NCBI RefSeq assembly: GCF_030144855.1
Contig: NC_082708.1
Location: forward strand, 170,562,001-170,626,000
Reading direction: 5' to 3'
Origin: Hypanus sabinus
Lineage: Eukaryota
Length of the DNA stretch: 64,000 nt
The notes below the pieces were generated by a model. The model worked only from the letters and a program-made list of their open reading frames with translations, was not told where the DNA came from and made no database searches. Each line of letters begins with the position of its first letter. Positions within the stretch are counted from its first letter, which is position 1. Below are positions 3,768 to 59,479 of the stretch, one piece after another. Made by a program: the position numbers and the translations under genes.

Positions 3768-4223
3768 TATAGCTTCAAGAAGCCAGTGCAAGCCCCTCTG
3801 CTTTTGAGTTCACCTCCTTTTCCGGCTCTCAGCAGGGTGGAGCCTTTGGAACTAGGACTGTATTTGGATTTGGCAATAAAGAAGAATGTGTGTGTCATGA
3901 CTAGCAGTTGACAAACTTTCTACACCATCTGTTTTGTTAGACCTCAAGCGTCCCCCTCCCCACCTGTGAGGAATGGTAAAGCTTTCAATCCCGGATGTTC
4001 CTGCACCTGCAGTTAATCAGCACTCAAAACTCCCAGTAATTCTCATCAAACCAACACTAGTTCTTCATGTTTGAGAAACAAACCCTCTTCATAGGTGCAA
4101 ATTGGGGAAGGAGTTCAGGATAGTTTTTGAAGTGCATAGCCTCTATATCTGCCTCTAGAGGTGCGGACTATAGATCTGGAACTACAAATTAAATTTAAAT
4201 GCAGTTTATTAAATCTGAAATTA

Positions 4224-5815
4224 CAAACCCCATTTCCAGAAAAGTTGGGATGTTTTCCAAAATGCAATAAAAACAAAAATCTGTGATATGTTAATTCACC
4301 TGAACCTTTATTTAACTGACAATAGTACAAAGAAAAGATTTTCAATAGTTTTACTGACCAACTTGATTGTATTTTGTAAATATACACAAATTTAGAATTT
4401 GATGGCTGCAACCCACTCAACAAAAGTTGGGACAGAGTTAAAATAAGTTTGAAAAATGCACAGAATATTCAAGTAACACCGGTTTGGAAGACTCCACATT
4501 AAGCAGGCTAATTGGTAGCAGGTGAGGTATCATGACTGGGTATAAAAGTAGCATCCATCAAAGGCTCAGTCTTTGCAAGCAAGGATGGGTCATGGCTCAC
4601 CCCTTTGTGCCAAAATTCGTGAGAGAATTGTTAGTCAGTTCGAAAGGAACATTTCTCAACGCAACATTGCAGAGAATTTAGGTCTTTCAACATCTACAGT
4701 ACATAATATTGTGAAAAGATTCAGAGAATTCAGAGACATCTCAGTGTGTAAAGGGCAAGGTCAGAAACCACTGTTGAATGTGCATGAACTTCGAGCAGCA
4801 CTGCCTAAGAAACCGTCATGCTTCTGTGACAATTATAGCCACCTGGGCTCGGGAGTACTTCGGAAAACCATTGTCACTAATACAGTCTGTCGCTGTATCC
4901 AGAAATGCAACTTGAAACTGCATTACGCAAGGAGGAAGCCATACATCAACTCTATGCAGAAACGCCGGTGAGTTCTCTGGGACCGAGCTCATCTCAGATG
5001 GACCGAAACACTGTGGAACCATGTGCTGTGGTCAGATGAGTCCACATTTCAGCTAGTTTTCGGAAAAAACGGGCGTCAAATTCTCCATGCTGAAGATGAA
5101 AATGACCATCCTGATTGTTATCAGTGAAAGGTGCAAAAGCCAGCATCTGTGACGGTATGGGGGTGCATCAGTGCCCACCGCATGGGTGAGTTGCATGTAT
5201 GTGAAGGTACCATTGACTCTGAGGCGTATATTATGATTTTAGAGAGACTAAAGTTGCCATCAAGGCGACGTCTCTTCCAGGGACATCCATGCTTATTTCA
5301 GCAGGACAATGCCAGACCACATTCTGCACAGGCTACATCAGCGTGGCTTTGTAGACACAGAGTGCATGTGCTTGACTGGCCTGCTGCCAGTCCAGATCTA
5401 TCTCCTATTGAAAATGTATGGCACATCATGAAGAGGAGAATCAGACAATGGAGACCACGGACCGTTGAGCAGCTGAAGTCTTATATCAAGCAAGAATGGA
5501 CAAAATTTCCAATTGCAAATTTCCTACAATTAGTATCCTCAGTCCAAAACGATTAAAAAGTGTTATTAAAAGGAAAGGTGATGTAACAATGGTAAACATG
5601 CGTCTGTCCCAACTTTTGTTGAGTATGTTGCAGCCATCAAATTCTAAATTTGTGTATATTTACAAAACACAATTAAGTTGGTCAGTAAATCTATTGAAAA
5701 TTCTTTCTTTGTACTTTTGTCAGTTAAATAAAGGCTCCCGTGAATTAACATATCACAGATTTTTGTTTTTATTGCATTTTGGAAAATATCCCAACTTTTC
5801 TGGAAATGGGGTTTG
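4224..5815 (+). mobile_element. Full-length Tc1 transposon (DD34E, long IR/DR-type TIRs), transposase disrupted
   Basis: TA-flanked ~210-bp TIRs (CAAACCCCATTTCCAGAAAAGTTGGGA). Transposase HTH at 4584-4970, then WSDES, VWGCIS, FQQDNARPH and SPDLSPIEN, with 34 residues between D and E. Stops and a frameshift are present. Confidence 0.95.
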
Positions 5816-6539
5816 TAAAATATATCAAATGCTTCCATCCATCAACTGACACATTTAATAATCCACTTAAATGAAAATCAAATTAGCAAGTTATTCAATC
5901 ATTCTGACTCCTTTGCCTTCTCCTAGATTATAATGAGCAAGAAGTGTGACCCTGCCTGTCTCATGTACAGCTGTGTCATCATCGGCTGCTCTATCTTTCC
6001 TAGCTAAACAATCAGCACCTATTTTTTAATTAACTATGGAAAACTCTACAGAGAAAAGGTCATCTGACACACCATGCCAAAGCAGGTTAAAAAACAAATG
6101 CTGCAATCAAGACTAACCTCACTATCGATACTTGTACCTGCCCCAACTTCTTATTCTGGTTTCTTCCTCCTCCTTTTCTAGTGCTGAAGGGTCCCAGCCC
6201 AAAATGTTGGCTCTTTATCTCCTTCCATAGATGCTGCCCGACTTGCTGAGTTCCTCCACTATTGTGTGTGTGTGTGTTAGTCTAGATTTCAAGCATAGGC
6301 AAAGTCTCGTGTTACTAGTCCATTTCCTCTAGCATTTTTGAATAACTGCTACAGTCTGAAATTCATTTCTTAAAAGATACTAGATATGTTTGAAAGAAAA
6401 AAAGCTGTAGAGCTGTTTGGAGTCAGAACCAACTTCAAACAGCTGGCACAGACACAATGAGCTGTTGGATGCCTTGTCTATTGCAACATATTGTAACCGT
6501 CATTGCCACAAAAAAATGTGAACGGTGTTTTCAACTGAA

Positions 6540-7648: not shown

Positions 7649-7960
7649 CCCATCACTCTGCCTGTTCTCCATCTCTCTCTGGTGCTCCCCTGCCCCTTTC
7701 TTTCTCCCGAGGCCTCCTGTCCCATAATCCTTTCCCTTCTCCAGCTCGGTATCACTATCACCAATCACCTTTCCAGCTCTTAGCTTCATTCCACCCCCTC
7801 CGGTCTTCGCATTTCCCCCTCCCCCTCCTACTTTCAAATCTCTTAGTATCTTTCCTTTCAGTTAGTCCTGACGAAGGGTCTTGGCCTGAAACGTCGACAG
7901 CGCTTCTCCCTATAGATGCTGACTGGCCTGCTGTGTTCCACCAGCATTGTGTGTATGTTG
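7649..7960 (+). mobile_element. Penelope-like element 3'/pLTR fragment containing a minimal hammerhead ribozyme motif
   Basis: Pyrimidine-rich tail like 11400-11790; GTC-CTGACGA-stem II-GAAACGTC-GAC at 7865-7898. Confidence 0.7.
7865..7898 (+). ncRNA. Minimal type I hammerhead ribozyme motif (PLE type)
   Basis: Core CUGACGA 7868-7874, stem II 7875-7887, GAAA 7888-7891, palindromic ACGU stem III, predicted cleavage after C7895, stem I GUC/GAC. Confidence 0.55.
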
Positions 7961-10404: not shown

Positions 10405-11795
10405 CTATGCTACATCGATGACTGCATTGGTGCTGCTTCCTGCAACCACACTGAACTTGTCAGCTTCCTCCACTTTGCCTCCAAGCCCCAACTGCCCTCA
10501 AATTTACCTGGTCCATTCTCGACACCTCCCTCCCTTCCTCGATCTCACTGTCTCTATCTCTGGAGGCAGCTTCTCCACTGATGTCTATCATAAACCCACA
10601 GACTCTTACAGCTACCTGGACTATACCCCCTCCCACCCTGTTACATATAAAGACACCATTCCCTTCACTCAGTATCTCCGTTTCTGCCACATCTGTTCTC
10701 AGGATGATGCTTTTCATTCTTGAATGAAGGAGTTGTCTCCCTTTTTTGAAAAAAGTGCTTCCTTCCTCCACCATCAACACTGCTCTCAATCGCATCTCTT
10801 CCATTTCATGCAAGTCTGTTCTTACCCCAACCTCCCACCACCCTACCAGGGATAGGGTTCCTCTTGTCCTCACCTACCACCCTACCAGCCTCAGCAACCA
10901 GCAGATAATTCTCCGGAACTTCTGCCAGCTCCACCTCCCTCCCCACTCCCCACTTTCATCTTTTCTCAGGGATCACTCCCTACATGACTCCCTTGTCCAT
11001 TCATCTCTAATCACTGATCTCCCTCTTGGCACTGATCCTTGCAAGTGGAATAAGTGCCCCTACACCATTTCCCTCACCAGCATCTTTCCAGTTGAGGCGA
11101 CACTTCACCGCTGAGCCTGTTGGGGTCATATACTATGTCCGGCGCTCCCGATGTGGCCTCCTGTATATCGGTAAAAACCGATGTAAATTGTGAGACTGCT
11201 TCACCATGCATCTACACTCCATCCGCAAGAAGAAGCAGGATACCCCAGTGATCACTTTTTTAATTCCACTTCCGATTGCCATTCTGATATGTCAATCCAT
11301 GGCCTCTACTGTCATGATGAGGCCATACTTACGATTGAGGAACAGCATCTTCTGGGTAACATCCAACCTGATAGCATGAACATCAACTTCTCGAACTTCT
11401 GATAATACCCCCCTCCCCCTTCACCATTCTCCATCCCCTTTTTCCTCTCTCACCTTCTCTCTTGCCTGCCCATCTAGTGATCACACCCCCTTTTCTTTCC
11501 TCCATGACCTTCTTCTATTAGATTCCCCCTTCTCCAGCCTCATATCTCTTTCACCCATCAACTTCCTAGCTCTTTACTTCATCCTTCCCCTTCCTGGTTT
11601 CACCTATCAGCTTGTGTTTCGCTCTCCCCTCCCCCATCTTTACTACTCTTATTTTCTTCCTCCAGTCCTGCCTATGGGCTCGGGCCTGAAACATGGACTG
11701 TACTCTTTTCCAGTAGATGCTGTCCGGCCTGCTGAGTTCCTCAAGCATTTTGAGTGTATTGCTTGGATTTTCAGCAGCTGCAGATTTTCTCTTGT
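10405..11795 (+). mobile_element. Penelope-like retroelement, 5'-truncated (RT C-terminus, GIY-YIG endonuclease, pLTR)
   Basis: FLDLTVSI..TDVYHKPTDSYSYLDY.SH..IPFTQYLR and RVPLVLTYHP motifs; VIYY..CGLLYIG GIY-YIG motif near 11125-11172. Confidence 0.88.
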
Positions 11796-12124
11796 TTGTC
11801 AATGGATTTATGGTTGTACTTTTATGCCAGCTATAGTGACAGAGGAATAAACAGGAGGTTCTGTTGCTGAGAGCCAGATTACCATTTTGTCTATTACCTT
11901 TCAGGTGGCAGGGTCAAGGCCAGCTTGGATGGAGTCCCCAGCATTCTTAAGTGGGAAAGGGAGCACTCAGAGTTCATGGTCCATGTCAGTATCTATCACA
12001 TAGGTAGGGAGGGTGATGATGTCCTGCAAAGTGAGTTCTGTGAGTTAGGAGCTAGGTAAGTTAAACCCTCCACGGGTTGATCACTATTCATGTCAAATTC
12101 AAGTGAGGCCAGAAACAGGAAGAT

Positions 12125-12780
12125 AGTAAGACTGTAAGACATAGGAGCAGAATTAGGCCACTTGGCCCTTCGAGTGTCCTCCACCATTCTATCCCGGCTG
12201 ATTTATTATCCCTCTCAACTCCATTATCTTGCCTTCCCCCCATAATCTTTGAACCCCCCCCCAAACTAATGAAGAACCTATCAGCCTCCACTTTAAAATT
12301 TACTCAATGACCTAGTCTCCACAGCTATTCGTGGCAATGAAATCCACAGAGTCACCACTCTTGGTCTAAACACATTCTTCCTCATCTCTGTTCTAAATGG
12401 ATGTCCCTCTACTCTGAGGCTGTGGCTAAAATAATTCTTCTTGTGTCCTCTGGTCCTAGACTCCCCCACTATAGAGTTATATAGTTATATAGACTCCCCC
12501 ACTATATATTCTCTTCACATCCATTTTATACAGGCCTTTCAATATTCAATAGGCTTCTATGAGATAGCCCCCATTCTTCTAAACTCCAGCGAGTACAAGC
12601 CCACATCAAATGTTAGCATTTTCATTCCTGGGATCACTTTTGTGAACCTTCTCTGGACCCTCTCCAAATTGAAAAATCTTTTCTTAGATAAGGGGCTCAA
12701 AACTGCTCACAACACTTCAAGTGCAGTTTAACCAATGCCTTATACAGTCTCAGAATTACATCCTTGTTCTTATATTCCAG
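12125..12780 (-). mobile_element. CR1 LINE 3' fragment
   Basis: Same 3' UTR and RT C-terminal sequence as the other CR1 copies. Confidence 0.75.
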
Positions 12781-13332
12781 TCCTGATGAAGGGTCTCAGC
12801 CCAAAGCATCAACTGTTTACTCTTTTCCATAGATGCTGCTTGGCCTTCTGGGTTCCTCCAGCATTTTGTGTGTGTTGTTTTGGATTTCCAGCATCTTATA
12901 TTCTAGAGCTCTTGCAACATCTGCTAATATTACATTTCCCTTTTTTTTAATCACCAACTCAACCTGCAAGTTATCACTTATGGCAGGGGTTCCCAATCTT
13001 TTTTATGCCATGGATCAAAACCAATAAGCAAGGGGTCTGTGGATGCCAGTTTGGGAAGCCCTGCTCTTGGGAATCCTGCAGAATGGCTCACAAACACGAA
13101 GAAATCTGCAGATGCTGGAAATTCAAGCAACACACACAAAATGCTGGTGGAACGTAGCAGGCCAAGCAGCATCTATAGGAAGAAATACAGTCAATGTTTT
13201 GGGCCGAGACCCTTCATCAGGATTAACTGAAAGAAAAGATAGTAAGAGATCTGAAAGCCGAATGGCTCACTAGTCTCTTTGCACCTTGGAGTTTTGAAAA
13301 TAAAAAATAGTCTACACTTTTTTTCTTCTAGC

Positions 13333-14129
13333 TGTTACGAACCCACAGGTTTCGTTTACTGTGGACTGTCACTTTAAAAGAGCGCTTTGTTGAGGCAGAA
13401 CTATGATGTTGTTCACTGACTGACTCACAGCTTGTTTACCTTTAAAACATGGACACAGACAGTCACAGTCAGGAATCAGAAGAAGAGAGAGAGAGAGAGG
13501 AACAAACCTGGAAAAGGTAGCAGCTCCAGCTTGTAGAAGCTGGGAATTTGGAACTCTGCTATACCCACAAGAGTGGGTTGATTATCAATCTACTGCACAT
13601 CAAATGTGTGTCTGTCACTTTGTATAATCCAAAGGAGTGGATTTAGGAATGTCCTGTGGGACCACTCGAAGTTAACCCTTGCATGGGTATGTTATGTGGT
13701 AATCGCTTGAAGATGACATCCTCTTGATAGATCACCTTGGTGGTAATTCATATGTGGATTTGGAACAGCCTGTTGCACGATCTTCGACAACTGATATTTA
13801 TTAATTACCATGGTGGAACCTGTGGAATTCGATGTGATTGCTTTCTCTTTGTGTTTTACCTGGGATTACAAATATTTCTCTCCCATCATTTATTCTGTGG
13901 ATGAACTGAACTTTCATGCTTTACCATTTCAAGGCTCTAAGCCTTGCTCCCCCAGGCTCGGTAGTTTGGGAGTTATATTTACACATATTGATACACATAA
14001 CATTGTTAACTTTTGGTTATCCTGTTTAAGTTACAATATTATAAGTAGTTAATAATAGAGTTTTAACATCAAAACCAAGTGTGAACTCTGTTGCTGCTGG
14101 TTCGTTTCTGAATTGTTACAGATCAATCA
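13333..14129 (+). repeat. Left LTR
   Basis: TGTTACGAACCCACAGG...AATCA followed by a 4-nt spacer and the PBS. Confidence 0.9.
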
Positions 14130-17100
14130 AAATTGCGGGCTCGTCTGGGATATGAACAATTGAGGGTTTATTGATTGATTAATTATCGATTTGATTGAGG
14201 AAATCCATTTTGATTTACTTGTCTGTGTAAATCGGAAGCAATGGATATTGAGGCATTTCTGGAAGCACTGGATCCTGGGGAATTAGAGTCACCAGAAAAG
14301 ACGAAGTGGTGGCTATTGCTAAAAAGCTGAGACTTGTTTCAATAAATGGTCTATGAGAAAGCCAGAGATTCAGAGGAAGATAGCTGAGTACTGTATTTCT
14401 TTGGGGAAGTTTGATGCTGAGAGATTAGAATTGTTCCCTGAACGTAAACCAGTTACCCATGAGCTCCAGGTACGGCTGGACCAATTAAGGTTCGACCGAG
14501 AGAGACTTAGATTAGAAGCTGCAGAAACAGACAAACAGAGGGAAGAAGCAGAAAAAAAGTATTTGAAGCTGAGGAAACAGAAAAACAGAGGCTGGAAGCA
14601 GAAAGACAGAGGCTGTTTGATTTGGAAAAGATAGAGAAAATGCAGCAAAGGGGTTTACTGATTGACCCTGGTGAGAATTTGTTGCCAATCAGGAAGCAAA
14701 ATTGGTCCCTCCATTTAATGAACCCAAGGTTGATAAATACTTTCAGTATTTTGAGAAGGTGGCTCAAAGTCAAAATTGGCTGGAAGGAAGCTGGTCTCTC
14801 TTGTTATGGACTATATTTATGGGTAAGGCTCAACAAGCTTACTCTGCTTTCTCAATTAGAGATGCTGCTAATTATGAGACAGTGAAACGGGCCATATTCA
14901 AAACCTATGAATTGGTTCCAGAAGCCTATAGGCAAAGGTTTAGAAGTTTGAGGAAAACTGTGAGTCAGACACGTGGAATTTGCTTATGAGAAGTTTGTGT
15001 GTTTTGAAAGATGGTGCAATCTGAAAATGTGAATGATGTTTTTAACAGCTTGAAAGAGTTGGTTTTATTTGAAAATTTTAAAGGGTGTGTCCCTGATGAC
15101 ATAAAGACCTATTTAGTTGAAAGGGATGCTGCCATTTTGCAGGAGTCTGCTAGATTAGCAGATGAGTTTTATTTAACCCACAAGGTTGAGTTTACCACAA
15201 GTAGGTGCTTCCAAAAGAGTAGCAGGGATAACCAGGATAAACCAGAAATTAAATCTGGAGCTAGTGACAAAAGTAAGGATGAAGGGAAGCAAGTGAAGGA
15301 GAAATATTCTGGTCTTACTTGTTACTATTGAGAGAAAGCTGGTCATGTTATGGCTAATTGTTACATCCTGAAGAAGAAAATGGTAAAGGAGGCAGCCCCA
15401 AATGCTTGTAGTCTGTATGTTGAAACACCTATAAACCCACAGGGGTCTGCACGTTCTGATGAGGCTCACTTAAGGACTGAGAAGTCTGACCGAGTTAAGA
15501 AAAGATTTGATCATTTTGTGTCAGATTGGTTTATATCAGTAAAGGAAGGGTCAACCAGTAAAAATTCTTTGAGATATTGGGGCTTCTCAATCACTTATAT
15601 TAGACAGTGTTGTGAAGTTTAATGATGAGACTGACACTGGTGAGGTAAATCTTATTAAAGGCATCGGGGGTGACGTTTTTCCTGTACCTCTGCACAAAGT
15701 TATTTTGCAGTTGGAGTTAGTGACAGGACTTGCTAAAGTAGGACTCCGGCCCAGTTTACCAATTGTTGGTGTTTCTTTGCTGTTGGGAAATGACCTAGCA
15801 GATGGTAATGTTGTTCCAGCAGTGCAGCTGACAGCTAAGCCAATCACTGATGTTTCCAAAACGGATTCTAACATTCATCCTTCCTGCGCAGTGATTTGAA
15901 GTATGGCTAAGAAGTCAGTCAATGTAGATAGTTCTGTGCAGCACAATTCTGCTACCATCCTAGACAAAATCGGGATTCAGGGTGTAATGACTTGTCAGGG
16001 ACGTTTCTGCCTTCATTTTTTCAACAGGATTCAGATAGTAAATCTGATGGGAAAGATTTATCTTTGTCTAGGAAGGAATTTATAGCAGAACAGAACTGAT
16101 TATATCAAGGATGAACTGTTAATGAGGAAGTAGAGACCACCTGCTATACCTGCAAGTGAGGAATGGGCGATTGTTCACCAAGTGGTAGTTCCAAAAGTTT
16201 ATAGGAAGGAGATTTTAACTTTGCCCCACAGTATGCCCTTAAGTGGCCATTTTGGTGTGAATAGAACTGTAAACAGGATCATGAAAGACTTTTTCTGGTC
16301 TAATTTGAGGAAAGATGTTGTGACCTTTTGCAGGAATTGTCACACTTGTCAGGTTGTGGGTGAACCTAATCAGCTCAATACAATGGCCCCACTCCGGCCT
16401 GTACCTGCATTCGGTGAACCTTTTTCTAAAGTTATTGTGGATTGTGTTGGCCCATTGCTGAAGACTAAAGCTGGCCATCAGTATTTGCTGACTATCATGT
16501 GTACAGCATCCGGATTCCTGGAAGCCATACCTCTCAGAAATATCAAAGCTAAAACTGTGTCAAACACTCTCATAAAGTTTTTTACTTTACTTGCTTTGCC
16601 TAAAGAAATCCTGTCTGATCAAGGAAGTAATTTTACATCTGGATTATTCCAGCAGGTAGTTTATGAACTGGGAGTTAAACAAATTACATCATCTGCGTAC
16701 CATCTGGAGTCACAAGGGGCTTTAGAAAGATTTCATTCTGCCCTCAAAACAATGATTAAGACATATTGTGTTGAAAATGAAAAAGACTGGGATGAAGGTG
16801 TATATTTGATTTCATTCACAGTGAGAGAAGTGGTACAGCAATCTCTGGGCTTTAGCCCCTTTAAACTTGAATTTGGTCATAGAGTGAGGGGACCTTTGAC
16901 TTTGTTAAAGGCACAGTGGATTAATAAAGACTTACATATTAATTTGTTAGCCTGTGTGCTGACATTCAAGGACAGGCTGTACAAAGTTTGCGAATTAGCT
17001 AAGCAAAACTTGAGAACAGCTCAGGGGAAAATGAAGGTTTGGTATCATCAACAGGTGAGAAAGAGACTTTTTAAACTGGGAGATAAGGTTTTAATACTGT

Positions 17101-18934
17101 TACTAACAAGTTCAAACCCTCTTCAGGTGAGATTTTTAGGTCCTTATGAGATTGTATCTCAGGTTAGTGATGTGAATTTCAGAATCAAAACACCTGATCA
17201 TAAATGAAAAACTGTGTTTTGTCATATCAATATGATAAAACCTTATTATGAGAATATTACCTTTGGTGAGACACATCCAGCAGCTGTGGTGGCTGCTGGC
17301 AGCCACAGTGAGACTGAAGACCCTGGGAAGGTAATTTTTGATTCTGCTGAGAATCATTTTAAACCAAACATCTTCCCAGTAAGACTAACAAATTCGGCTA
17401 TTTTAGAAAACATCGATAACAAGTTGGCCCATTTGCAGCCACAGCAAAGACAACAAATGAAAGAATTAATTTTGAAGTTTAAAAATTTATTTTCTGATAT
17501 TCCAAATCGAACCACAGTCACATCACATGATGTGGATGTTGGAGATGGCAAACCAATCAAGCAACATCCCTATCATATGAACGTGGAAAAATGTAAATTG
17601 GCTGAGCAAGAAATTGAATATATGCTGAAAAATGGTATTATTAGGCCTTCACCTTCAAATTGGATTTCACCTTGCATTATTGTACCTAAACCTGATGGTA
17701 GTGTTAGATTTTGCACTGATTGTAGGAAGGTAAATGCAGTAACAAAAAACAAATGCTTATCCTATCCCCAGAGAGGATGATTGCATAGATAAGGTTGGAA
17801 AAGATAAGTTTCTTACAAAGATTGATCTGTTAAAAGGATATTGGTGTGTTCCATTGACAGACAGAGGTAGAGAAATTTCTGCTTTTGTGACACCTCTGGG
17901 TTGTATGAATACAATATTTTGCTGTTTGGGATGAAAAATGCTCCTGGAACGTTCCAGAGAATGATTAATTCTGTGAATCAAGGGTTAGAACACACAGAAG
18001 CCTGTATTGACAATTTAGTCATGGGAAATGACACTTGGGAAGCTCATATCTCTGCAGTAGAAAAGCTGTTTAATAAGCTTTCCCAGCCCAACCTTACAGT
18101 TAATTTAGCTAAGAACAAATTTGGCCATGCTACTGTAACCTATCTTGGTTATATAGTGGGTCAAGGTGAATTAGCTCCTGTTTAGGCAAAAGTCCAGGCA
18201 ATTCCCGAAGTTCCGATTTCAATTGGGAAAAAGGTTCTTCGAAGATTTCTGTGAATGCTTGGATATTATCATAAGTTCTGTAAGAACTTTGCTGATAATG
18301 CTCCTCCTTTGAACGACCTCCTAAAGAAGGTTGAAAAGTTTGTTTGGACAGAACCTTTTCAGGAGGCATTTGATCAATTGAAAGCCATTTATGTCACCAA
18401 CCTGTGCTCAGGGCACCTGACTTTGCAAATCCCTTCTCTATAGCTGTTGATGTCACTGATGAAGCTGCAAGAGCAGTATTATTACAAATGGGTAACAATG
18501 ATGTTGAACATTCTGTAGCTTACTTTTCAAGGAAATTTAATGAACATCAAAGAAATTACTCCACCATAGAGAAAAGATTATTGTCACTTAGATTTGCAGC
18601 ATTTTGATGTTTATGATTGCCCAGCTCAGAAACCACTTGAGGTTTATACAGAGCATAATCCATTGGTGTTTTTGCATAAGATGAAGGATAAAAACAGAAG
18701 ATTGTTAAACTGGTTTTGCAATAATATATTATGATAATTCACATTAAAGTCAAGGATAATGTAATTGCAGATTGACTTTCCAGATGTTAAGCATGCAATG
18801 TATGGAATAGAATCTGTGTTTTTTAAATATGTATTTGCAAAATGCTGTGTAGTAGTTGCACCTGTATTGGTTTATATATTGTAGTTTGCTCTTCTAGATC
18901 AAATGTTTCTACTTTTGGGGGAAGTGGTGGAGAA

Positions 18935-19000
18935 TCTAGTGGTATGATTCTCACTTGAGGTGCGAGAGGTACCAGTTTTCAAATCCCGGACGAGCCCCCG
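18935..19000 (+). pseudogene. tRNA-Pro copy (about nt 11 to the CCA end) embedded in the retrotransposon
   Basis: TCTAGTGGTATGATTCTCACTTGAGGTGCGAGAGGT...TTCAAATCCCGGACGAGCCCCCG matches vertebrate tRNA-Pro but lacks the first ~10 nt, so the acceptor stem cannot form. Confidence 0.88.
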
Positions 19001-19004
19001 ATTT

Positions 19005-19793
19005 TGTTATGAATTGTAACAATTTAGAAACGAACCAGCAGAAATAGAGTTCATGCTTGGAGTCTGGTTTTGATGTTAAAACCACTATTTTATTAGTAAT
19101 ATTTCTAATATTGTAACTTAAACAAGATAAACAATAGTAAACAGTGTTATGTGTAAATATAACTCCCAAACTATCGAGCATGGAGTAACAAGCCATAGAT
19201 TCTTGAAATGGTAAAGCATGGAAGTTCAGTTCATCTACAGAAGAAATGAGAGAGGTATTTATAATCCCAGATAAAACATAGAGAGAAGGCAATTACGTTG
19301 AATTCCACATGTTCCATGATGCTAATTAATAAATATCAGTTGTCAAAGATCCTCCGTCGAGCTGTTCCAAATTCACATAGGAATTACCACCAAAGTGATC
19401 TGTCACAGGGATGTAATCTTCAATGGGTTCCCACATAACTTACCCATGCAAGAGTTAACTTTGAGTGGTCCCACAAGACATTCCTGAATCCACTCTTTTG
19501 GATTATACAAAGTGAGAGACACACATTTGATGTGCAATGGATCGATAATCAACCCACTCTTGTGGGTGTAGCAGAGTTCCAAATTCTCAGCTTCGACAAG
19601 CTGGAGCTGCTACCTTTTCCTGGTTCGCCCCTCTCTCCCTGCTCTTCTGATTCCTGACTGCGACTGTCTGTGTCCTTGTTTTAAAGGTAAACAAGCTGCG
19701 AGTTAGTCAGTGAACAACATCATAGTCCTGCCTCACTGAAGCACTCCTTTAAAGTGACAGTCTACAGTAAATGAAACCTGTGGGTTTGTGACA
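19005..19793 (-). repeat. Right LTR, in inverted orientation
   Basis: The reverse complement (TGTCACAAACCCACAGGTTTCATTTACTGTAGACTGTCACTTTAAAGG...) aligns along the full length of 13333-14129. Confidence 0.92.
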
Positions 19794-19799
19794 TACCAA

Positions 19800-20182
19800 A
19801 GTACATGTCCAAACACCTCTCTACACTGTTTTCTCTCTACTCCTCTTTGCTCATTGTCCCCACTTGTCTAAGCCCTTCTGTAGTCTCCCAATTTCCTTAA
19901 CACTCCCTGCCCCTCCATCTATCTTTGTAACATCTGCAAACATGGCCACAAATCCATCAATTCCATCATCCAAATCAATGAGATATAACAGGAAAAGAAG
20001 TGGTTGCAATAATGGCCCATGTAGAACCCCACTAATCACTGGCAGCCAACCAGAATAGGCCCCCTTTATTCACAAACTTTGCCTTCTGCCAGTCAGCCAA
20101 TCTTCTACACATCTTAATATCTTTCTTGTAAGGTCATGGGGTCTTAACTTGTTAAGTAGCTTCATATGCAGGACATTGTCAA
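19800..20182 (-). mobile_element. CR1 LINE RT fragment
   Basis: SGV..G..L.PLLFLLYLIDLDDG...FAD.TKI motif. Confidence 0.75.
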
Positions 20183-23100
20183 TGTTATGGTCCAGTCCGT
20201 GAAGTCCGCATTCTGGTTCATGGCCCGGTCCATCAGATTCAGATTCAGTTTATTGTCATTTAGAAACCACAAATGCAATGCAGTTAAACAATGAGATAAA
20301 CGTTCCTCCAGAATGATAGCACAAAAGCATATGACAAAACAGTCTACACCAGAAAATCCATATAACATTTGGCAATCCCCAATCCAGAGTCTGGAGAGGC
20401 TGCTGCGTATTAATATCGTGCTACCATATTCATGTGTTCCCCAGAAAGGAGCTCCAAATCCACCAGACAAAATAAGACCAAAAACTAAAGCTACAAGTCC
20501 TGCACAAAACCACATAGTTACAACATATAGCTGCAACAGTGCAAAGAATAGCATAATTTATAAAAAAAAACAGACCTTGGGCACAGTAAAAATAGTCCAA
20601 AGATGTTAAAAGACTACAAGTTCGAAAGAAACCACCACACAGATCCCACAAGTCATCAAGGTCCCGATTTGACTCGTCATCCCATGCTGGCGGCAGAAGG
20701 AAATGCCCCCGCTGTGGACTTCCACAGTGCCGCCCGACTCAGCCTCGCAGACACAGCACACAGTGAAAGGTTTGTTGAACCCAGCCTCGCAGATGCAGTA
20801 CACAGTGAAAGTGACCTGACTGCCGCGGACTCCGAGTCTGTCGAACCTCCAAGCCTCCAACCATCCCCTCCGGCACAGCTTCTCCGAGCACATTCCTTTG
20901 CTGAGCGTATTAAAACACCCCTGCCAATGGCCATCGGCAACATGACCCCGAGGACTGGGGGTCTGTTCTTCCCAGCAGAGACCCGGAACTCATAGCAGGA
21001 GCATCAACGAAGAAGGTCTTCCTGGAGATTTCCAGATGTTACTCCGTGCTCCCACGTCTGTTTTCAACCGATTATAATTGCGCACGGCACCCCGCTTCAC
21101 AAATAAGAGATAATCAGCTCCGGAGTGGCCGCTGCAAGCTGCATCGCGCCGCCATTTTGGATCGTTATTTAACTAATTATTTAACATCGTGCCTTATTCC
21201 AGGTTTTCCTCTTTTCCCTTGTTCTGTTGGCTGCTCCAATTGAGGCACCTGATTCTTGTTTTGGGCTGGCTACATAAATAGCTCCTGGGTTCAGCTTCAT
21301 TTGCTGGCTGGTGGGTGGGATTTGATGACTGTTGATTCGTGCCGTTTGGCGGGAAGTGGGCTGAGGTTTGATTAGCCACGAGCACTGGATTGGTCTGTGA
21401 GATGAAGGGTGGAGGAACTGCTGGGGTGTTGTGGGGGACATTCTGTGGAAATATGGACTGATGGCCTGTATAGATCCGGAATGATATTCATACATGGTTC
21501 CTTACAAACTCCGATAGGATGGCAGGGAGGGAGACTGATGGTGACAGCAGTAGCACAGAGTTTGAGTGGGAAGAGGTGGGGAGAGGGACTAAGAATAGGA
21601 AGGTGATGGGTCAGAAAAGAAAAAAAGGTGGGTCTAGTGTAGGTGGATCAGAAAATGAGGGAAGAGAAATTAAGAAGAAGGGCCCGAGGGCAAATTTGCT
21701 AAATGTAGTGGTAAGCTTTGAGGGGGAAGGCAGAGTAAAGAAAATCAATCTGCTTAATTTAACAAAAATCATCAGTTGGTAAGTAGGGGAAGTGAGCCAT
21801 GCGAGAATTTTAGGAGATTGAAACCTGCTGATAGGATGTAAAACTAAAGAGCAGATTGAGAAGGCACTGATGGTGACTAATGTTGGGAAAGTCAACATGT
21901 CCAGGGTTGTAAGAGTTGGAGCACAAAGGGTCAATGGTTGCAAGGGATGATCTCCGGGGTTCCCCTCAGTGTTAATATGAAGGAGCTAGTGGAGAACTTA
22001 AGGGTGAGGAATAGTTCAGTGAAGAATGTGAAAAGAATGACAAGGGGAGCAGAGAAAAGCGAGACTGAAGCTGTTCTGGTAGAATTTGAGGATAAGCTGC
22101 CTCCAAAGGAGTTGTATTTTGGATTTCTGAGATACAATGTAAGAGAATATATACCAAAACCTATGAGATGTTTCAATTGCCAGGAGTTTGGGCATGTGGC
22201 CAAAGTGTGCAAAGGAAAGAGAAGATGTGTAAGGTGTGGTGGGGAACATGAATATGGAAAATGTGGAGAGGGAGTGGGACCAGAGTGCTCTAATTGTGGA
22301 GGTAACCATAGTGTAGCATACTGGGGATGTGAAGTGGTGAATAAAGAGGTGGAGGTGCATGGATAGAGAAGAAATTGGTGACCTTTATAGCAGGAATGGT
22401 AAATGCAACTTGTGAGATCAAATCTAAAACTAAAAGGATTCAGATTATTGTGAAAGCTGCAGAGTACCATTTGTGTATGATAGGATTAAAATGGGAAGGG
22501 TAAATAATGAACTCAGGGTACAGTTAAGTCAAGAGACAGTATGTGTGGCTTGATATTACTAATAATGCTACTTCTTCAATGGAATGCAAGAAGCCTGATT
22601 AGTAATGGACAAGATTTCAAGCAGTTTATAGCTAGTAGGAGAGAAAAGCCAGATGTTGTGTGTATCCAGGAGACATGGTTAAAACATAATTTAGATTTTG
22701 TTTTATATGGTTATGAGGCAGTAAGGCGAGACAGGAGAAAGGGGGGAGGAGAAGGATGTGCAACTTATGTAAAAGCAAGGCAATTCTTATAGAATACTAG
22801 GTATAGGAAGTGAACAAGAGCATGTGGTAGTAAAAGTATGGGCTGAAAGGAAAGAGTTTGTGATTATGAACTATTATAATCCATGCAGACGGCCAGAGTT
22901 AAACAAGCTTGCAGTGATACAAGGGTAGAAGATTAGTAACATTGTTTGGTGTGGTGATTTTAATGGACAGTGTATTATGGGGGAGCAACAGAACAGACAT
23001 CAATGGTCAAGTAAAAGAGGAGTTGCTAGATGAGAAGTATTTAGTGTGTCTAAATGATGGCAGTAGTACTAGAATTGATGTTAATACAGGTAAAGAATCT

Positions 23101-23488: not shown

Positions 23489-23561
<73 letters not shown>

Positions 23562-23728
23562 CTTTATTCATCCCCAAGGGGAAATTCAACATTTTTCCAG
23601 TCCCATACACTTATTGTAGCAAAACTAATTACATACAGTATTTAACAGTATAAATATGATATACATCTAAAATCACCCTCCCAAAAAGCATTAATAAATA
23701 GCTTTTAAAAAGTTCTTAAATAGTTTTT
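23489..23728 (-). repeat. (AGAT)n microsatellite forming the tail of a short LINE 3' end (Rex1-like) inserted in the I-clade LINE
   Basis: About 18 perfect AGAT units at 23489-23561 directly adjoining CTTTATTCATCCCCAAGGGGAAATT (AATAAA on the minus strand). Confidence 0.7.
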
Positions 23729-27255: not shown

Positions 27256-30200
27256 AGCTCTTCCAGATGGTGAAATTGACAAGGTGCCAGTAGGATATTA
27301 CTTGGAAAAAGGACTATTGATGAGGAAGTGAAGATCACCTACAATTCCTACAAGTAATGAATGGAATGTTGTTCACCAGGTAGTTGTTTCTAAAGTTTAT
27401 CAAAATGAGATTTTAACTTTAGCCCATAGTGTGCCCTTCGGTGGACATTAAGGGGAAAGGAAAACTGTGGACAAGATTTTAAAACATTTTTACTGGCCTG
27501 GTTTGAGAAAAGATGTGGCGACATTTTGCAGAATGTGTCATACTTGCCAAATTGTGAGTAAACCAAATCAATTTACTCGTGGCTTCAATGCAATCTATTC
27601 CAGCATTCAGTGAACCATTTTCTAAAATTACTATAGATTGTGTAGGTCTATTACCAAAAACAAAAACTGGTTATCAGTACTTGCTGACTATCATGTGCAC
27701 AGTGTCTAGGTTTCCAGATGCAGTACCACTTAGGAATATAACAACTAAAACTGTAATAAAGGCTCTTAATAAAATTCTTTATTTTGGGTTGCCTAAGGAA
27801 ATAAAATTACTGCCTTGATCAGATTGTATGTCTGGATTGTTTCAACAGATAGTTTATAAATTGGGAGCTAAGCAAATCACTTCATCTGCATATCATCCAG
27901 AATCGCAAGGTGACTTGGAGAGGTTTCATTCTACCTTCAAGACTATGATTAGGACATATTGTGTGGAAAATGAAAATGATTGGGATGAGGGTATACACTT
28001 CTATTTGCAGTAAGGAAGTCAGTACAGGAATCATTAGATTTCAGTCTATTTAAATTTGTATTTGGGCATAGAGTTTGAGGACCTTTAGCCTTATTAAAAG
28101 TACAATAGATTAATAAAGAGGTACACACTAATTTGTTGGACTATGTTTTAAGAATTAAGGTCCAATTACAAAAAGCTGGTAGTTTACCCAGGGATCTCAC
28201 CAGGAACATAATGGATGATTCATCTGAAACTCATTCTAAACCCAACATTGTTTCTGTCAGATTACCAAACTCAACCATTCTGGAAGATATTGATGAAAAA
28301 TTAGCACATTTACAGCCAGATCAGAGGCAGCAGATGAAGCAATTAATTTTTAAATACAAGGATTTATTTTGCAGATGTTCCTAGAAGAACCACAGTAGCT
28401 TCACATGATGTAGATGTTGGAGATGCCAAACCCATTAAAAATCATATAGGATGAATGTGGAAAAATGTGAACTTGCTGAGGAAAGTTAAATATGTTAGAG
28501 AATATTATTTGACCTTCTAACTCAAGTTGGAGTTCACCTTGTGTTATGGTGCCTAGGTCAGATAGTATTAGGTTTTGTACAGACTACAGCAAGGTGAATG
28601 CTGTGACGAAAACAGATGCATATCCAATTCCTAGAGTAGATGATTGTGTAGATGAAGTTGGAAAAGCAAAGTTCCTTACAAAGTTTAATTTATTGAAAAG
28701 GTATTGGTGTGTTCCATTACCAGATAGAGGTAGAGATTTCTGTATTTGTAACTCCATCTGGGTTATATGAATATAATGTTCTTCCATTTGGAAGAAAGAA
28801 CGCCCCAGGTACTTTCCAGCAGATGATTCATTCTGTGATTCAGGGATTAAAGGACACAGATGCCGATATTGAAGATTTAGTGATAGGAAATGATACTTGG
28901 GGAGCACACATTACTGTGGTGGAGAAAATATTTGAAAGGCTTTCAAAAGCTAACTTAACTATTAACTTAGCCAAAAGTGAATTTGGACATGCCACTGTGA
29001 CTTACCTTGGCTATGTTGTGGGTCAAGGTAAGGTTGCTCATGTTCAGGCAAAAGTTCAGGCAATTTTAGAGATTCCTACTCCAACTGGGAAAAAAAAAAT
29101 CAAGATTCCTGGGAATAGTAGGATATTACCAAAATTTTTGTAAGAATTTTGCTAATGTGGCCCTTCCATTAACTAACCTCTAGAAGAATGAAAAGTTTGT
29201 GTGGATAGTGCCTTGTCAAGAAGCATTTGAAAATTTGAAAACAATGATATGTCAACAACCTGTGTTCAAGGCACCTGACTTTGAAAAACCTTTTTCATTA
29301 GGTGTAGATGCTAGCAATGAGGCTACAGGAGCAGTATTAATGCAAAGGGATCAGGGTGATGAGGTTGATCATCCAGTACCTTACCTTTCTAAGAAATTTA
29401 ATGAGCATCAAAGAAACTATTCAACTATAGAAAAGGAATTGTTAGCTCTTGTTTTGGCCTAGAACATTTTGATGTGTATGTTGGTACAACTCAAAAGCCA
29501 CTCATAGTCTACACCAGCCATAGTCAGTTAGTGTTTCTGAGTAAGATGAAAAACAAAAATAGAAGGTTATTAAATTGGAGTTTAATGTTGGAGTGCCATA
29601 TTTTGATTACTCATTAAAGGCAAAGATAATGTGATTGCTGATTGTCTATCTCGATGTTGAAAGGACAAGGTAATTTTTATGGAGTGATATTTTAACCTTT
29701 GTAACATTCCTGATGTATAGTAAATTGTAAGATGCTGTATGTGTCACGAGAAGGGGACAAAGGTGCTGGAAGAGGACCCACATGCAGGACACAAACACTT
29801 TTTTCTCAGATACAATAAAATGCGTTTATTGCTAGTTAGATGATCGGAAAATCGAGGGCAAAGGAATACGAACCTCGGACTAGGGACTAGAATTGCCACA
29901 GACCTGGGATTTAGAAACGGGGAATGGGGATCGCCGCAGTCATGGCTTGGACAGCGGGAACACAGTCAGCTGCGGACCTTGGACTCGGACAGGTAGAACA
30001 TGGACAATGGACAGGAACATCAAGTCAGGACTCCGCCTTCCACTCAGGCACCAAGCTGAGACTCTTCAAGGGGTAGACACAGAGAAGGAACATAAACATT
30101 GAGTCAGGACTCCGTCTTCAACTCACCCCTGAGAGACTGACCTCGCCCTGACCTACTCTGGTGACGGAAGGTGAATTGCTGGTTCTCCGATGTGGGCTGG

Positions 30201-31383
30201 ATCGCTCTGGCTTGTCGTAGCGGCAGCAACTTGTAAAGGCTTCTTTAATGCTCGCACGATGAACTGCTAAAGTGAAGCGCTTATAAGTTGCTGGTTCGGG
30301 TCGAGGGTAGATTACCTTGATTGCCGAGTTTGAGGGACGAGTGAAACGCAATTAGACGGGAACAAGGAGTCAATGGTCCGGATCACAATCTAACTAAATT
30401 TAAAGGGGAACCGATCCAGACCATGACAGTATGATAATACTCTGTATACTGTAAATTTTATAAATTTGTATTTCTTCTCTTGTAAATAATTAATTGTTAA
30501 AATTTTGTTTATGACAGACCAAAAATTTTTTTTGGAGAGAGGTGTTACATACCCGTGGGTATCTTGTGCCTGTCACATAACCATGATGTAATTGAGGCTA
30601 TGCTGGGCATGATGTAATGGTCTTATGATGGTGGAGTGATGTAATTTTCCCGCCAGTGAAAGGTCACGTGATAGTTTTTTTTTCAGCAGGGTATAAAAGG
30701 AAAACACCTCCCTGTGACACAGGGCAGTTTGTGGATGAATTCGCCAGTGACACAGTTTTGTTTTAAAGTGGAGTTTTACTTTCTGCCTTAAGTCTCAAAG
30801 TTTATTGCCTGCAGTTTTGCTATAATACTGCCAGTTCAGTCCAGTTGGAGAGTGAAGATTTATTGAAGTTTGGGAAGCTGGAAGAATCAAGGAAAGTTGG
30901 TGTTGCCGGTTGTAAAGCAGGTTTGACCTTATTCTTGACCTTATTTGACCACTAATTCTTCATGCAAAGAATTAGTAACTTGTGTCCAAGTTAACTCTTT
31001 CATTTCTGAAAGCAAAGAGTTAGACACAAAGTTTCGCCAAGGAGAGGTCAGTGCCTTTAAGCCGTTTTATTTCCTTCAACCGTAATCCCTCAGCGAAGCA
31101 TACTTCGGCTGGGATCAGCAGTAGCATCTTGAACGAGGAGTTAATTACTCCAAGGAAAGTCTCTCCTAACTGACTGTAAGTCATTTTGGACTTTTTTTTC
31201 AATACTAAAGAACTGATTTTGCATTTCTTGCTTTAAGAACTGTTCAAGCTGCTGTATAGCAGTCGATTTCTGATTAAGTTAGTCATTTGTTTACTTCTGG
31301 GGTTTTTAGCTGTGTTTAATAAATGTTTTATTTGTTATAAAAAAAACCTGTCTCAATTATATATTCATTGTTGCTGGATCGTA
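27256..31383 (+). mobile_element. Second Gmr1-like Gypsy element, 5'-truncated (INT, RT, RH) with a normally oriented 3' LTR
   Basis: INT (IDCVGLLPKT, SAYHPESQG), RT and RNase H homologous to the 13.3-kb element; PPT GGAGAGAGG then an LTR starting TGTTACA at 30543. Confidence 0.85.
29742..30428 (-). mobile_element. Solo LTR with 5-bp TSD
   Basis: TGTCA...TGACA flanked by GTATG on both sides; a second copy lies at 39926-40575. Confidence 0.88.
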
Positions 31384-38581: not shown

Positions 38582-41130
38582 TGTGAGAGACTTTACTCTG
38601 TTCGGGAACAGAAATAAAGACACAGACCTCAGTATAAGGTTAATCCTTTAATATGTGATCACGGGGAGCCATTGTCTTACGACTGCACCAAAGTCAGGAT
38701 ACTTATGAAACTTATACTGAAAATTTTAGGCAGTAGCCAACAGCTAAATGTACTTGATCAGAGATTCCAAGAAACGCTTGTTAGGTATTGACAAGCTTTC
38801 CAGTGTTCTCATGTGATACACAAAATTAGAATCGCACATCTACAATCAGTTCCTCTATTAGCTGGACAATCTCAGACAAAGGTTAACAATACCTCACCTC
38901 TATCATGATCTATTTAGAGCTGTTGTTAGCACACACAAACAAGGCAGCATCTGTATCGTATCCTGTCTCTGTCATGACACAAGTGTTGATCAATATTTAG
39001 CTAACCATGCTTAACAACAAAATTTAATTAAAAAATTAATTTTATTCTTAATTTTCTTCCACAGTCCCCTTCTTTTTGATCATCAGTTTAACATTAGCCT
39101 TATCTCTCACCCACCTCTTGAGGATGTTGCTTCTTTATTTCCCCAATGAGGAAAGGCCTCAGATTAAAACAGCCTTCTTCATCATATTCTGGATCATAAG
39201 GTTCCAGATCAACTTGCGAGGATCATTTTACAGGAATGATGGAGGCTGAGCTATCCAGGAACAGGCGCATCGTACAACCATGACCAATGTGATCATTGCT
39301 AAAATTAGCCTGAAATAGATAAGGGTTCTCCACCATAAAGCAGTCTTTTCTCTGCACCTACTCCTTCCCATTAACTGAGCTGTCCTACTTCTCCAGTATC
39401 AGCACCTTTCAGCTGTTTGAGTAGCTACTTACAATCTAGGTACATTATGATCTGTTAAATTATAATTAGACATATACCATCACTCAAAGAAATTTCCCTT
39501 AGAGAATAGCGATCTGATTGACATTCATGTAGCTTGTTCTTCTGTTGATTATCTATTCCCTCCTGTATCCATTCCTTCTTTTGTCTGGTCAATAATATTA
39601 AAATTGTTGGTTATTTTATTGAAGCATTCTTGCCTCTTTTTATTGAAGGGAATTGGCTCACTGCATAGGAATCCCCATCTTTACCCATAAACTAACCACA
39701 TTAAGTCCATATAAACTGAGCCTAAGTGAATATTATAGCTCTTCCCCAGCATAATGAACCCCAATAGTCCACATAACAAAAATTATTTCTTCATAAATCA
39801 TGCGTCTGGCTAGCACTGCTAAATTTGAATGGAACCCCTAATCTGGGATATATTTCCTTCATGGATATCTTAACTATGGATTGAGTATCATTTTCTTCTA
39901 GTGGAAAGGCCTCCAACCATTTGGAGGTCCGGAACGGTTCCCCTTTAAATTTAGTTAGGTTGTGTTATGATCCGGACCATTGACTCCTTGTTCCCTTCTA
40001 ATTCCGTTTCACGTGTCCCTTGACCTTGGCCATTAAGGTAATCTACTCTCGACCCGAACGGGCAGTTTATAAGCCACTGGCTTTAGCCATTTGGGGCCAG
40101 AGTGTTAAGAAGCCTTAGCAAGTCACCGTCGCTACTACAAGCCAGAGTTATCCAGCTCGCATCGGAGTACTGGCAATTGGCCTTCCTTCACCAGAATGGG
40201 TCCGGGCAAGGTCAAAATGCCAGGGGCAAGTTGAAGGCGGAGTCCTGGCTCGATGTTCATGCCCAGTGTCCGTGTCTATCTCTCGAAGAAGAGTCCTGTC
40301 TCAGTGCCTGAGTTGAAGGCGGAGTCCTGGCTTGACTGTGTTTGGTGCCCAGGTTTCTGGCTGCGGTGAATCAAGGTCCCATTTTCCTAGTCCAAGGTCC
40401 GCGGCGATCCAAGTTCCTAGTCTCCTAGTCCGAGGTTTGTGTTGCTCTTTGTCCTCCTTGATTTCCCGGTTCTCTGTGTAGTGAGTAATAAACGCTATTT
40501 TATTGAACCTAAGAAAGACGTGTTTGTGTCCCGCTTGTGGGTCCTCTCCCACACCCTTGCCCCCACCTTGTGACACATAATTACTATCACTAATAGATAT
40601 TTATAACCTCCACTGGTAGGCATGTTCATAAAGTCTATCTTTAAATTGGCAAATGGTGCCTTCATGGGTGGCAAATGATCAAATTCAACAGGTGACTTTC
40701 GTCCATTGTTTTTCTGGCAAATCTCACAGATTGGTATAACCTGAACTGCAATTACTGTTAGTCCAGGTGCAAATCATTTTTGATGTATAATACCCCTGAT
40801 TCTGGGGACACACAGGGTGATTATTTAAGTGTCTCCACACCCTCTGAGTCCCTAAAACTCTGCTTCACCTTGTGTACTCCCTGCCCCTTTTCTGGGGTCC
40901 CATCTTGCATGGAATTTAAATCTTGCAGGTTTGGGGTCAGGGTTACAGGAGTACATTGCTCCTGCATATGTACCAGCATAGCTTTTCCTGTATTAGCAGC
41001 TTATTTAGCAGCTGTGTTAGCAGCAGCATTTCCCTTAGTTATGGGGTCTGAGGCAATAATGTGAGCTTTGCACTGAATGACAGTAATTTGTTTGGGCAAC
41101 TGCACTGCTTGTAGCATTTTCTGAGGTCTG
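38582..41130 (-). mobile_element. Endogenous retrovirus remnant (RNase H, integrase, env TM-like segment, PPT, 3' LTR)
   Basis: Minus strand: LPKQITVIQCKAH..KGNAAA (RNase H); CEICQKNN..PFANLKIDF..GYKYLLVIV and SKWLEAFP..RLGVP (integrase); hydrophobic WWRTLIYFRLILAMITLVMVVRCAC; PPT AAAAGAAGGGGAC; LTR 39063-38582 (TG..CA). Confidence 0.75.
39926..40575 (+). mobile_element. Solo LTR, same family as 29742-30428, inserted in the ERV integrase
   Basis: Reverse-complement similarity to 29742-30428; ends TGACA; AATAAA near 40487. Confidence 0.85.
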
Positions 41131-59252: not shown

Positions 59253-59479
59253 ATTATCGTATTATGTATATGTCACGGTATACCACCCTGAGATTCTTTT
59301 TCTTGCAGGCATTTAAGGAAAAATAAAGAAATACAGCAAAATTAATGGAATCAATACATAAATAAGCACACACAAAATGTTGGTGGAATGCAGCAGGTCA
59401 GGCAGCATCTATAGGAAGAAGTACAGTTGACATTTCAGGCTGAGACCCTTCGTCAGGAACCAATAAACAACCGATGTGC

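Follow-up and report, generated by a model that had tools for sequence, protein, structure and literature searches.

The window analysed here, a stretch of 64,000 nucleotides from Hypanus sabinus (contig NC_082708.1, positions 170,562,001 to 170,626,000; all coordinates below count from its first letter), carries at 13333-19793 a Gmr1-like Ty3/Gypsy retrotransposon, element 1, whose two long terminal repeats (LTRs) stand in inverted orientation and whose right LTR is preceded by a copy of the primer tRNA, tRNA-Pro. The best explanation, to which we assign a probability of roughly 60 %, is a single old and dead insertion that originated as one aberrant reverse-transcription product and was integrated via two U3 ends. 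In that case the element presents a structural variant in which a Gmr1-like LTR retrotransposon was fixed in the form of a reverse-transcription accident, preserved as a single decayed copy and devoid of a present function. The features are given below with strand and basis of assignment, including the primer-binding site (PBS), the polypurine tract (PPT), the candidate target-site duplication (TSD) and the open reading frames (ORFs).

13329-13332, no strand: left flanking tetramer TAGC, candidate half of a TSD (arm alignment; 4-bp TSDs in relatives)
13333-14120, plus: 5' LTR (arm A), TGTTAC...GTTACA (repeat search, BLAST, arm alignment)
14121-14133, plus: 13-nt spacer from LTR to PBS (arm alignment; homologous to the shorter GAAAT spacer of relatives)
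14134-14157, plus: tRNA-Pro PBS, 18-nt core with 2 mismatches, complementarity to 24 nt, mismatch at the site of tRNA position 58 (PBS search, tRNA alignment)
14241-15899, plus: remains of gag (putative SCAN-like capsid) and of the protease region, spread over several frames (ORFs, weak SCAN match, BLASTP against the relative L004)
16182-17207, plus: integrase ORF of 341 aa with H2C2 zinc finger, rve DDE core and SH3-like C-terminus (ORF, Pfam, homologues)
17214-18185, plus: reverse transcriptase, split over at least two ORFs (RVT_1 match, DNA homology to element 2)
18404-18740, plus: RNase H domain and end of pol (Pfam, DNA homology to element 2)
18913-18924, plus: T-run and PPT, GGGGGAAG at 18917-18924 (aligned PPTs of element 2 and L002; same motif in L004 and L003)
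18925-18934, plus: 10 nt at the junction (TGGTGGAGAA), which may prolong the PPT as a purine-rich stretch, be filler or be the remnant of a strongly decayed segment (read from the sequence)
18935-19000, plus: tRNA-Pro positions 11-76 copied in sense orientation, the terminal 18 nt (18983-19000) being the reverse complement of the PBS (tRNA alignment, PBS search)
19001-19014, minus: PBS-to-LTR spacer, reverse complement, homologous to 14121-14133 (arm alignment)
19015-19793, minus: inverted LTR (arm B), U5 end inward, U3 end outward (repeat search, BLAST, arm alignment)
19794-19797, no strand: right flanking tetramer TACC, candidate half of a TSD, 3/4 match (arm alignment)

Inverted arms and the copy of tRNA-Pro

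Repeat searches, run on 12000-21500 and on the window in full, revealed a single long inverted repeat of about 790 bp, composed of collinear blocks including 13333-13503 / 19623-19793 and 13490-13882 / 19248-19640, and no direct copy of it. In a BLAST comparison of the element with the window, the sole inverted match paired 13333-14156 with 19793-18978; by both searches, this LTR occurs in the window solely as the pair of arms A and B. The LTR of about 790 bp recurring as its own reverse complement, which the initial annotation had described, was thus confirmed, with limits refined to 13333-14120 on the plus strand (arm A) and 19793-19015 on the minus strand (arm B). The LTRs proper are 87.2 % identical over 767 aligned columns and differ by 63 transitions (13 of them at CpG), 35 transversions and 5 gap events, a Kimura two-parameter distance of 0.142. 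The sequence of the window is free of N. The inverted repeat is genuine, of old date and well outside chance expectation. A divergence of 13 % between the arms makes a recent assembly or library fold-back artefact unlikely, as these would yield near-perfect palindromes. Exact-word scans of metagenome contigs and genome contigs gave no matches to stretches conserved between the arms.

An alignment of both arms with their flanks (MAFFT) placed the begin of similarity exactly at the outer TGT on each side, and the flanks are unrelated to each other. Since the homology stops exactly at TGT...ACA, both outer ends are U3 termini, in agreement with the initial annotation. The tips of U3 and U5 are near-identical inverted repeats (TGTTAC versus TGTAAC), thus a DNA with two U3 ends presents the usual ...ACA-3' ends to integrase. 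The flanking tetramers, TAGC at 13329-13332 on the left and TACC at 19794-19797 on the right, are as initially reported and match in three of four bases. Their interpretation as one decayed 4-bp TSD fits the size observed in relatives and is weakly suggested by the match: agreement in at least three of four bases is calculated to occur in about 5 % of cases by chance, versus about 90 % for a true TSD at 13 % divergence. A search for a paralogous empty site with the immediate flanks (13258-13332 and 19794-19891) found neither a second copy in the window nor a repeat spanning the join.

The 18-nt PBS published for tRNA-Pro occurs at exactly two sites in the window with up to 3 mismatches, versus zero expected by chance. 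The sites, 14134-14151 (plus) and 18983-19000 (minus), lie one inside each arm and in opposite orientations. Both arms are collinear through the LTR tip (...GTTACA), a spacer of 13 or 14 nt and the PBS; beyond this point, arm A enters the leader and gag, and arm B follows tRNA-Pro (MAFFT). With the published sequence of human tRNA-Pro-TGG (PMC12217144) as reference, a pairwise alignment of 18935-18999 with tRNA positions 11-74 gave 57 identities in 65 and one indel of 1 nt, in register with the PBS. After removal of the PBS part, tRNA positions 1-57 still scored 54 at this block. The best unrelated site, with both strands of the window considered, scored 25, and shuffled tRNA did not exceed 27. 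Arm B consists of U3-R-U5, the spacer and the PBS (19000-18983), followed by in-register tRNA-Pro beyond position 58, down to position 11 at 18935. Read on the plus strand, the right arm has the order tRNA-Pro (11-76), spacer', U5', R', U3', which is the 5' end of minus-strand DNA with the primer attached. A spacer and PBS together with a copy of tRNA-Pro 11-76 are the signature of strong-stop DNA that was joined to, or copied through, its primer. The block is 88 % identical to its source, versus 87 % between the arms, and this equality indicates that the block is as old as the arms.

Programs for tRNA detection did not recognize the block. ARAGORN called no tRNA in the whole window, Rfam yielded chance matches only, both for 12-32 kb and for the 131-nt junction alone with lax filters, and folding of the block gave no cloverleaf and a z-score near 0. 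For a DNA copy that lacks the first 10 nt and has decayed by 12 %, misses by ARAGORN and Rfam are expected, and the same decay accounts for the missing cloverleaf. The G at tRNA position 34 could be taken as the inosine of tRNA-Pro(IGG) read as G; this single base was not relied on.

Element body, relatives and the polypurine tract

The interior is one collinear element on the plus strand with the order gag, protease, integrase, reverse transcriptase and RNase H. ORF pieces resembling gag lie at 14702-14986 and 15011-15328, a piece of the protease region at 15612-15896, all on the plus strand. The 341-aa integrase ORF (16182-17207) has Pfam matches to Integrase_H2C2, rve and an SH3-like domain, and matches to RVT_1 (17901-18182) and RNase H (18404-18604) follow on the same strand. 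The SCAN match of the gag ORF is weak (E=0.0069) and below the curated cutoff. In BLASTP, the gag and protease pieces map collinearly onto the gag-protease ORF of the relative L004, at residues 155-244, 262-319 and 468-566 (E-values of 2e-31, 8e-18 and 1e-21); this ORF bears PF02023 (SCAN). The integrase has 1174 homologues in animal assemblies, some with integrase and then RVT_1 in one ORF and some named Gypsy integrase-like; none was closer than 72 % identity in a search whose length window leaves out intact polyproteins. An integrase upstream of the reverse transcriptase is the defining oddity of the Gmr1 clade within Gypsy (PMC8220671). From this domain order and the Gypsy pol domains, the initial assignment to Gmr1-type Ty3/Gypsy is judged correct. 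Pfam also weakly matched the N-terminal fragment of the reverse transcriptase (17214-17777, plus) to TcdB_N (E=8e-4), with 20 bits against a cutoff of 27 bits; a toxin gene was rejected and the match taken as a chance match within a retrotransposon pol.

Three Gmr1-like relatives from other assemblies (L002, L003 and L004) and a second element of the window served as controls. This element 2 (27270-30545 and beyond) is Gmr1-like, truncated at the 5' side so that it begins with the integrase, and 72.6 % identical to element 1. It contains a nested insertion of about 685 bp (29738-30422), which is related in inverted orientation to 39926-40579. The LTRs of all three relatives are direct: 6057-6530 / 11778-12251 in L002, 5997-6493 / 11780-12276 with 98.6 % identity in L004, and a pair of roughly 100 bp in L003. 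In each, a tRNA-Pro PBS lies 2-5 nt inside the 5' LTR, and the 4-bp TSDs are CATA/CATA, AAGT/AAGT and TTAT/TTAC. Alignment with tRNA-Pro found no similarity beyond 23 nt in the three relatives. With direct LTRs and no tRNA block in these elements, inverted LTRs and a tRNA block are not features of the clade. The closest protein match, L001, is nearer to element 2, and its contig ends before the 3' part. An unrelated part of the L001 contig (ENA contig ERZ21784934, 217-310) matches the window at 23520-23611 over 94 nt with 92.5 % identity; this is probably a shared interspersed repeat, and it hints that the assembly ERZ21784934 is from a related species.

DNA homology of element 1 to element 2 reaches 18788, the end of pol, and the T-run with GGGGGAAG at 18913-18924 aligns with the PPTs of element 2 and L002 in a three-way alignment; together these show that the body is complete up to its PPT. 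In four of four controls the PPT directly adjoins the TGT of the LTR: ...GGAGAGAGG is followed by TGTTACA in element 2, ...GGGGGGAAG by TGTTATG in L002, GGGGGGAAG by TGTTATG in L004 and GGGGGAG by TGTCACG in L003, the LTR being shown as direct in the three relatives. The junction of element 2, at 30544/30545, is as normal as the initial annotation had stated. In element 1, the inverted LTR had been placed exactly where a direct 3' LTR would follow the PPT; this did not hold, since 90 nt intervene between the end of the PPT (18924) and the start of the inverted LTR (19015), namely 10 nt, the tRNA-Pro copy and the 14-nt spacer. Of the canonical architecture, the PBS inside the 5' LTR (14134-14151) and the PPT ending the body (18917-18924) are both present, and the direct LTR pair with a 3' LTR abutting the PPT is replaced by inverted arms. 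For the 10 nt TGGTGGAGAA (18925-18934), an origin from tRNA positions 1-10 (3/10 matches), from the start of U3 (4/10) or from tRNA positions 6-10 with a 4-nt insertion (4/5) was considered, none with a significant match.

The complementarity of the PBS to tRNA-Pro extends over 23-24 nt, to tRNA position 53-54, in arm A (14134-14157), L002 (6535-6557) and L004 (6499-6521), with a mismatch at the position-58 site in arm A and at position 57 in L002 and L004. Lentiviruses show the same pattern, which was interpreted there as the use of a second stop at position 54 (PMC8599865). The extended complementarity suggests that A58 is commonly passed in the lineage of arm A, L002 and L004.

Proposed aberrant reverse transcription and alternative origins

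In normal synthesis, plus-strand strong-stop DNA is initiated at the PPT and extends over U3-R-U5 and, of the primer tRNA, only the last 18 nt, where m1A58 stops it. Without this stop, the strand extends into the tRNA, gains non-genomic sequence and fails in plus-strand transfer (PMC11251516; PMC8599865). For element 1, plus-strand strong-stop synthesis would have run past m1A58 through the tRNA-Pro primer to about position 11. The read-through strand, unable to make the normal second jump, would have been attached, at the PPT, to the element's plus-sense body. The joining may have been a template switch of the reverse transcriptase: the read-through strand may have primed on a plus-sense template that terminated at the PPT, or a plus strand with the same end point may have copied the read-through strand; or two pieces of cDNA may have been end-joined before integration. 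The sequence fits a template switch and end-joining alike, and in either form the joining step is something we infer. The join lies at the PPT, the sole site of the body where reverse transcription makes a defined 3'-OH, which indicates an event inside the reverse-transcription complex. The linear product would have had the order LTR, PBS, gag-pol, PPT, tRNA copy, inverted PBS spacer and inverted LTR, with U3 at both ends and ...ACA-3' termini. Integrase would have inserted it with a 4-bp target duplication, now TAGC/TACC. The inserted copy could not have replicated further and would have decayed since by about 14 %. Aberrant reverse transcription, with a flipped strong-stop DNA integrated through two U3 ends, had been one of two options in the initial annotation; it gains support from the spacer, the PBS, the copy of tRNA-Pro 11-76 and the join at the PPT.

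In its domain order, probably SCAN-like gag, tRNA-Pro PBS, GGGGGAAG-type PPT and TGT...ACA tips of the LTRs, the element resembles the Gmr1-like clade; unlike its relatives with their direct LTRs, it has an inverted 3' LTR with a spacer and PBS of its own, and a tRNA copy between the PPT and this LTR. The right arm corresponds to read-through plus-strand strong-stop DNA as known for HIV-1 with tRNA-Lys3 and drawn for HTLV-1 with tRNA-Pro: an LTR, a PBS and then in-register tRNA beyond position 58. Such products are transient dead ends, observed in vitro or in mutant cells, whereas here one was apparently rescued, completed and integrated in the germ line. Retroviral autointegration, reportedly described by Shoemaker et al. 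in 1980-81, gives inversion circles in which one LTR is likewise inverted relative to the body. In autointegrants, however, the CA of the U5 tip is joined straight to an internal target, whereas the U5 tip of the inverted LTR continues into spacer, PBS and tRNA and was never a free end. Autointegration was rejected for lack of a direct joint to an internal target. Inverted terminal repeats also bound the DIRS1-type retrotransposons, but these have a tyrosine recombinase and an internal complementary region and no tRNA PBS, whereas element 1 has a DDE integrase, a PBS and a PPT. No recombinase domain was found in any ORF (Pfam), and no further copy of any arm segment inside the element (repeat search, BLAST). 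Membership in DIRS was rejected, as element 1 has a DDE integrase, a PBS and a PPT and lacks an internal complementary region.

Several observations weigh against an aberrant reverse-transcription product. The structure is known from one copy only, and for the integrated architecture of PPT, tRNA and inverted LTR no precedent was found in the open-access literature, weak evidence either way. ARAGORN and Rfam miss the tRNA, and its identification comes from the pairwise alignment to human tRNA-Pro. The usual hard stops at G37 and A58 appear as plain G and A, which requires a hypomodified primer or a clean read-through. The 10 nt at 18925-18934 match neither tRNA positions 1-10 nor the start of U3 significantly, and the joining step left no direct signature such as a clear microhomology. 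The TSD is imperfect, and its 3/4 match, with a chance expectation of about 5 %, is weak evidence.

Among the other origins considered, the one that survives best, while still unlikely, is a chromosomal event in two steps: a break near the start of the 3' LTR of a normal element, with loss of this LTR, was patched by end-joining capture of the strong-stop cDNA of a sibling, comprising LTR, PBS and tRNA copy. The right arm taken alone is a strong-stop-type molecule, the 10 nt at the join could be filler, and capture of retrotransposon cDNA at chromosomal breaks of yeast has reportedly been observed (Moore and Haber 1996, Teng et al. 1996). Yet this requires a break no more than about 10 nt away from the PPT/U3 border in an element of 6.4 kb, a chance of roughly 0.3 % if breaks are uniform. 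The deletion would have to take the whole 3' LTR yet leave a right flank that matches the left at 3/4, the TSD-like flanks then being coincidental. The arms and the tRNA block also agree in identity, as a single event predicts.

That the assembly misjoined two loci near 18925-18935 is very unlikely. Repeats are the usual sites of misjoins, but the arms differ by 13 % and are not collapsed identical repeats, and a misjoin that sets a PPT against a tRNA copy is unlike the output of an assembler. Even a misjoined right arm, with its tRNA, PBS spacer and LTR, would stay an unusual strong-stop fossil. Two independent insertions in opposite orientation, followed by a deletion that took away one element's 3' end together with the other's body, have a slighter chance still, despite being the commonest route to oddly oriented LTRs in old DNA rich in transposable elements, and despite a window full of nested repeats. 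They leave over the tRNA copy beyond the PBS, such that the second element would itself need to be aberrant; no coding remnant of a second element was found on the minus strand (ORFs, BLAST and Pfam in the window); and the deletion would need to have its two breakpoints at the PPT and at the end of the tRNA block. Simple nested insertion was rejected as well. The second option of the initial annotation, a lineage that normally propagates with inverted terminal repeats in a DIRS-like manner, has the inverted arms themselves as its only argument and is scarcely credible for a Gypsy element with a DDE integrase, without a tyrosine recombinase or an internal complementary region, present as one copy in 64 kb and related to L002, L003 and L004 with direct LTRs and to element 2 with a normal PPT-LTR junction, all the more as a transcript initiated in the 5' LTR would have no 3' R available when the first strand transfer is due, and normal replication would not regenerate the tRNA block, which an accident explains.

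Neighbouring repeats and implications

The window holds further repeats. At 4219-5820 lies a short non-autonomous DNA transposon with terminal inverted repeats of about 216 bp that are 94 % complementary; it starts with CAAACCCCATTTCCAG, is flanked by TA on both sides and looks Tc1/mariner-like from these termini. A repeat resembling a short interspersed element (SINE), with the core ...CATAGATGCTGC...CTGAGTTCCTCCAGCATTTTGTGTG, is present in many copies on both strands, and two of them, at 12824-12880 and 13125-13181, lie in inverted orientation to each other next to the left end of element 1.

6182-6273, 7831-7960, 11668-11799, 12781-12896, 13088-13257, 59367-59458 and others, both strands: copies of the SINE-like repeat (repeat search, BLAST)

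The right flank of element 1 is an old repeat, shared between 19892-20100 and 63543-63756 with 74 % identity. An ORF on the minus strand (19854-20039) reads ...MFADVTKI..., reminiscent of a reverse transcriptase motif of long interspersed elements; this ORF had no Pfam match. Several further inverted repeat pairs of 87-148 nt and 78-91 % complementarity (41986-42260 / 48496-49736 and 49182-49649 / 62763-63210) link 42, 49 and 63 kb and are probably one more repeat family in both orientations.

Failures of reverse transcription are normally invisible; they have been studied in vitro or in mutant cells and were assumed to be dead ends. The locus of element 1 appears to preserve one in a genome, with all landmarks still readable: PPT, primer tRNA copied as far as about position 11, PBS, spacer and LTR. 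It suggests that the m1A58 stop can be missed in vivo in the animal germ line, that the read-through strand can still enter full-length DNA, and that integrase can use two U3 ends. For annotation, the element cautions that programs which rely on direct repeats to find LTRs will split such copies or miss them.

Ohshima and Okada are said to have proposed a strong-stop-DNA model for the origin of tRNA-derived SINEs. The right arm resembles the molecule of this model, a primer tRNA followed by minus-strand U5-R-U3. Unlike a SINE precursor, it bears no evidence of transcription by Pol III or of amplification of the copy; its A-box region is truncated and its B box decayed. The boldest interpretation, to which we give only a small chance, is that the right arm is a germ-line fossil of the intermediate formed by primer tRNA and strong-stop DNA: the reverse transcriptase of a vertebrate LTR retrotransposon would have copied almost the whole primer tRNA, and the failed product would have been salvaged as a DNA that had U3 at both ends and was competent for integration. 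If true and recurrent, this would supply the physical intermediate that the strong-stop model postulates for the birth of tRNA-headed retroposons (SINEs). The succession of a PPT, a sense tRNA and an inverted LTR provides a search pattern for how frequent such copies are across genomes and whether they seed tRNA-headed repeats. The element is of interest for reverse transcription as well as for the origin of these repeats.

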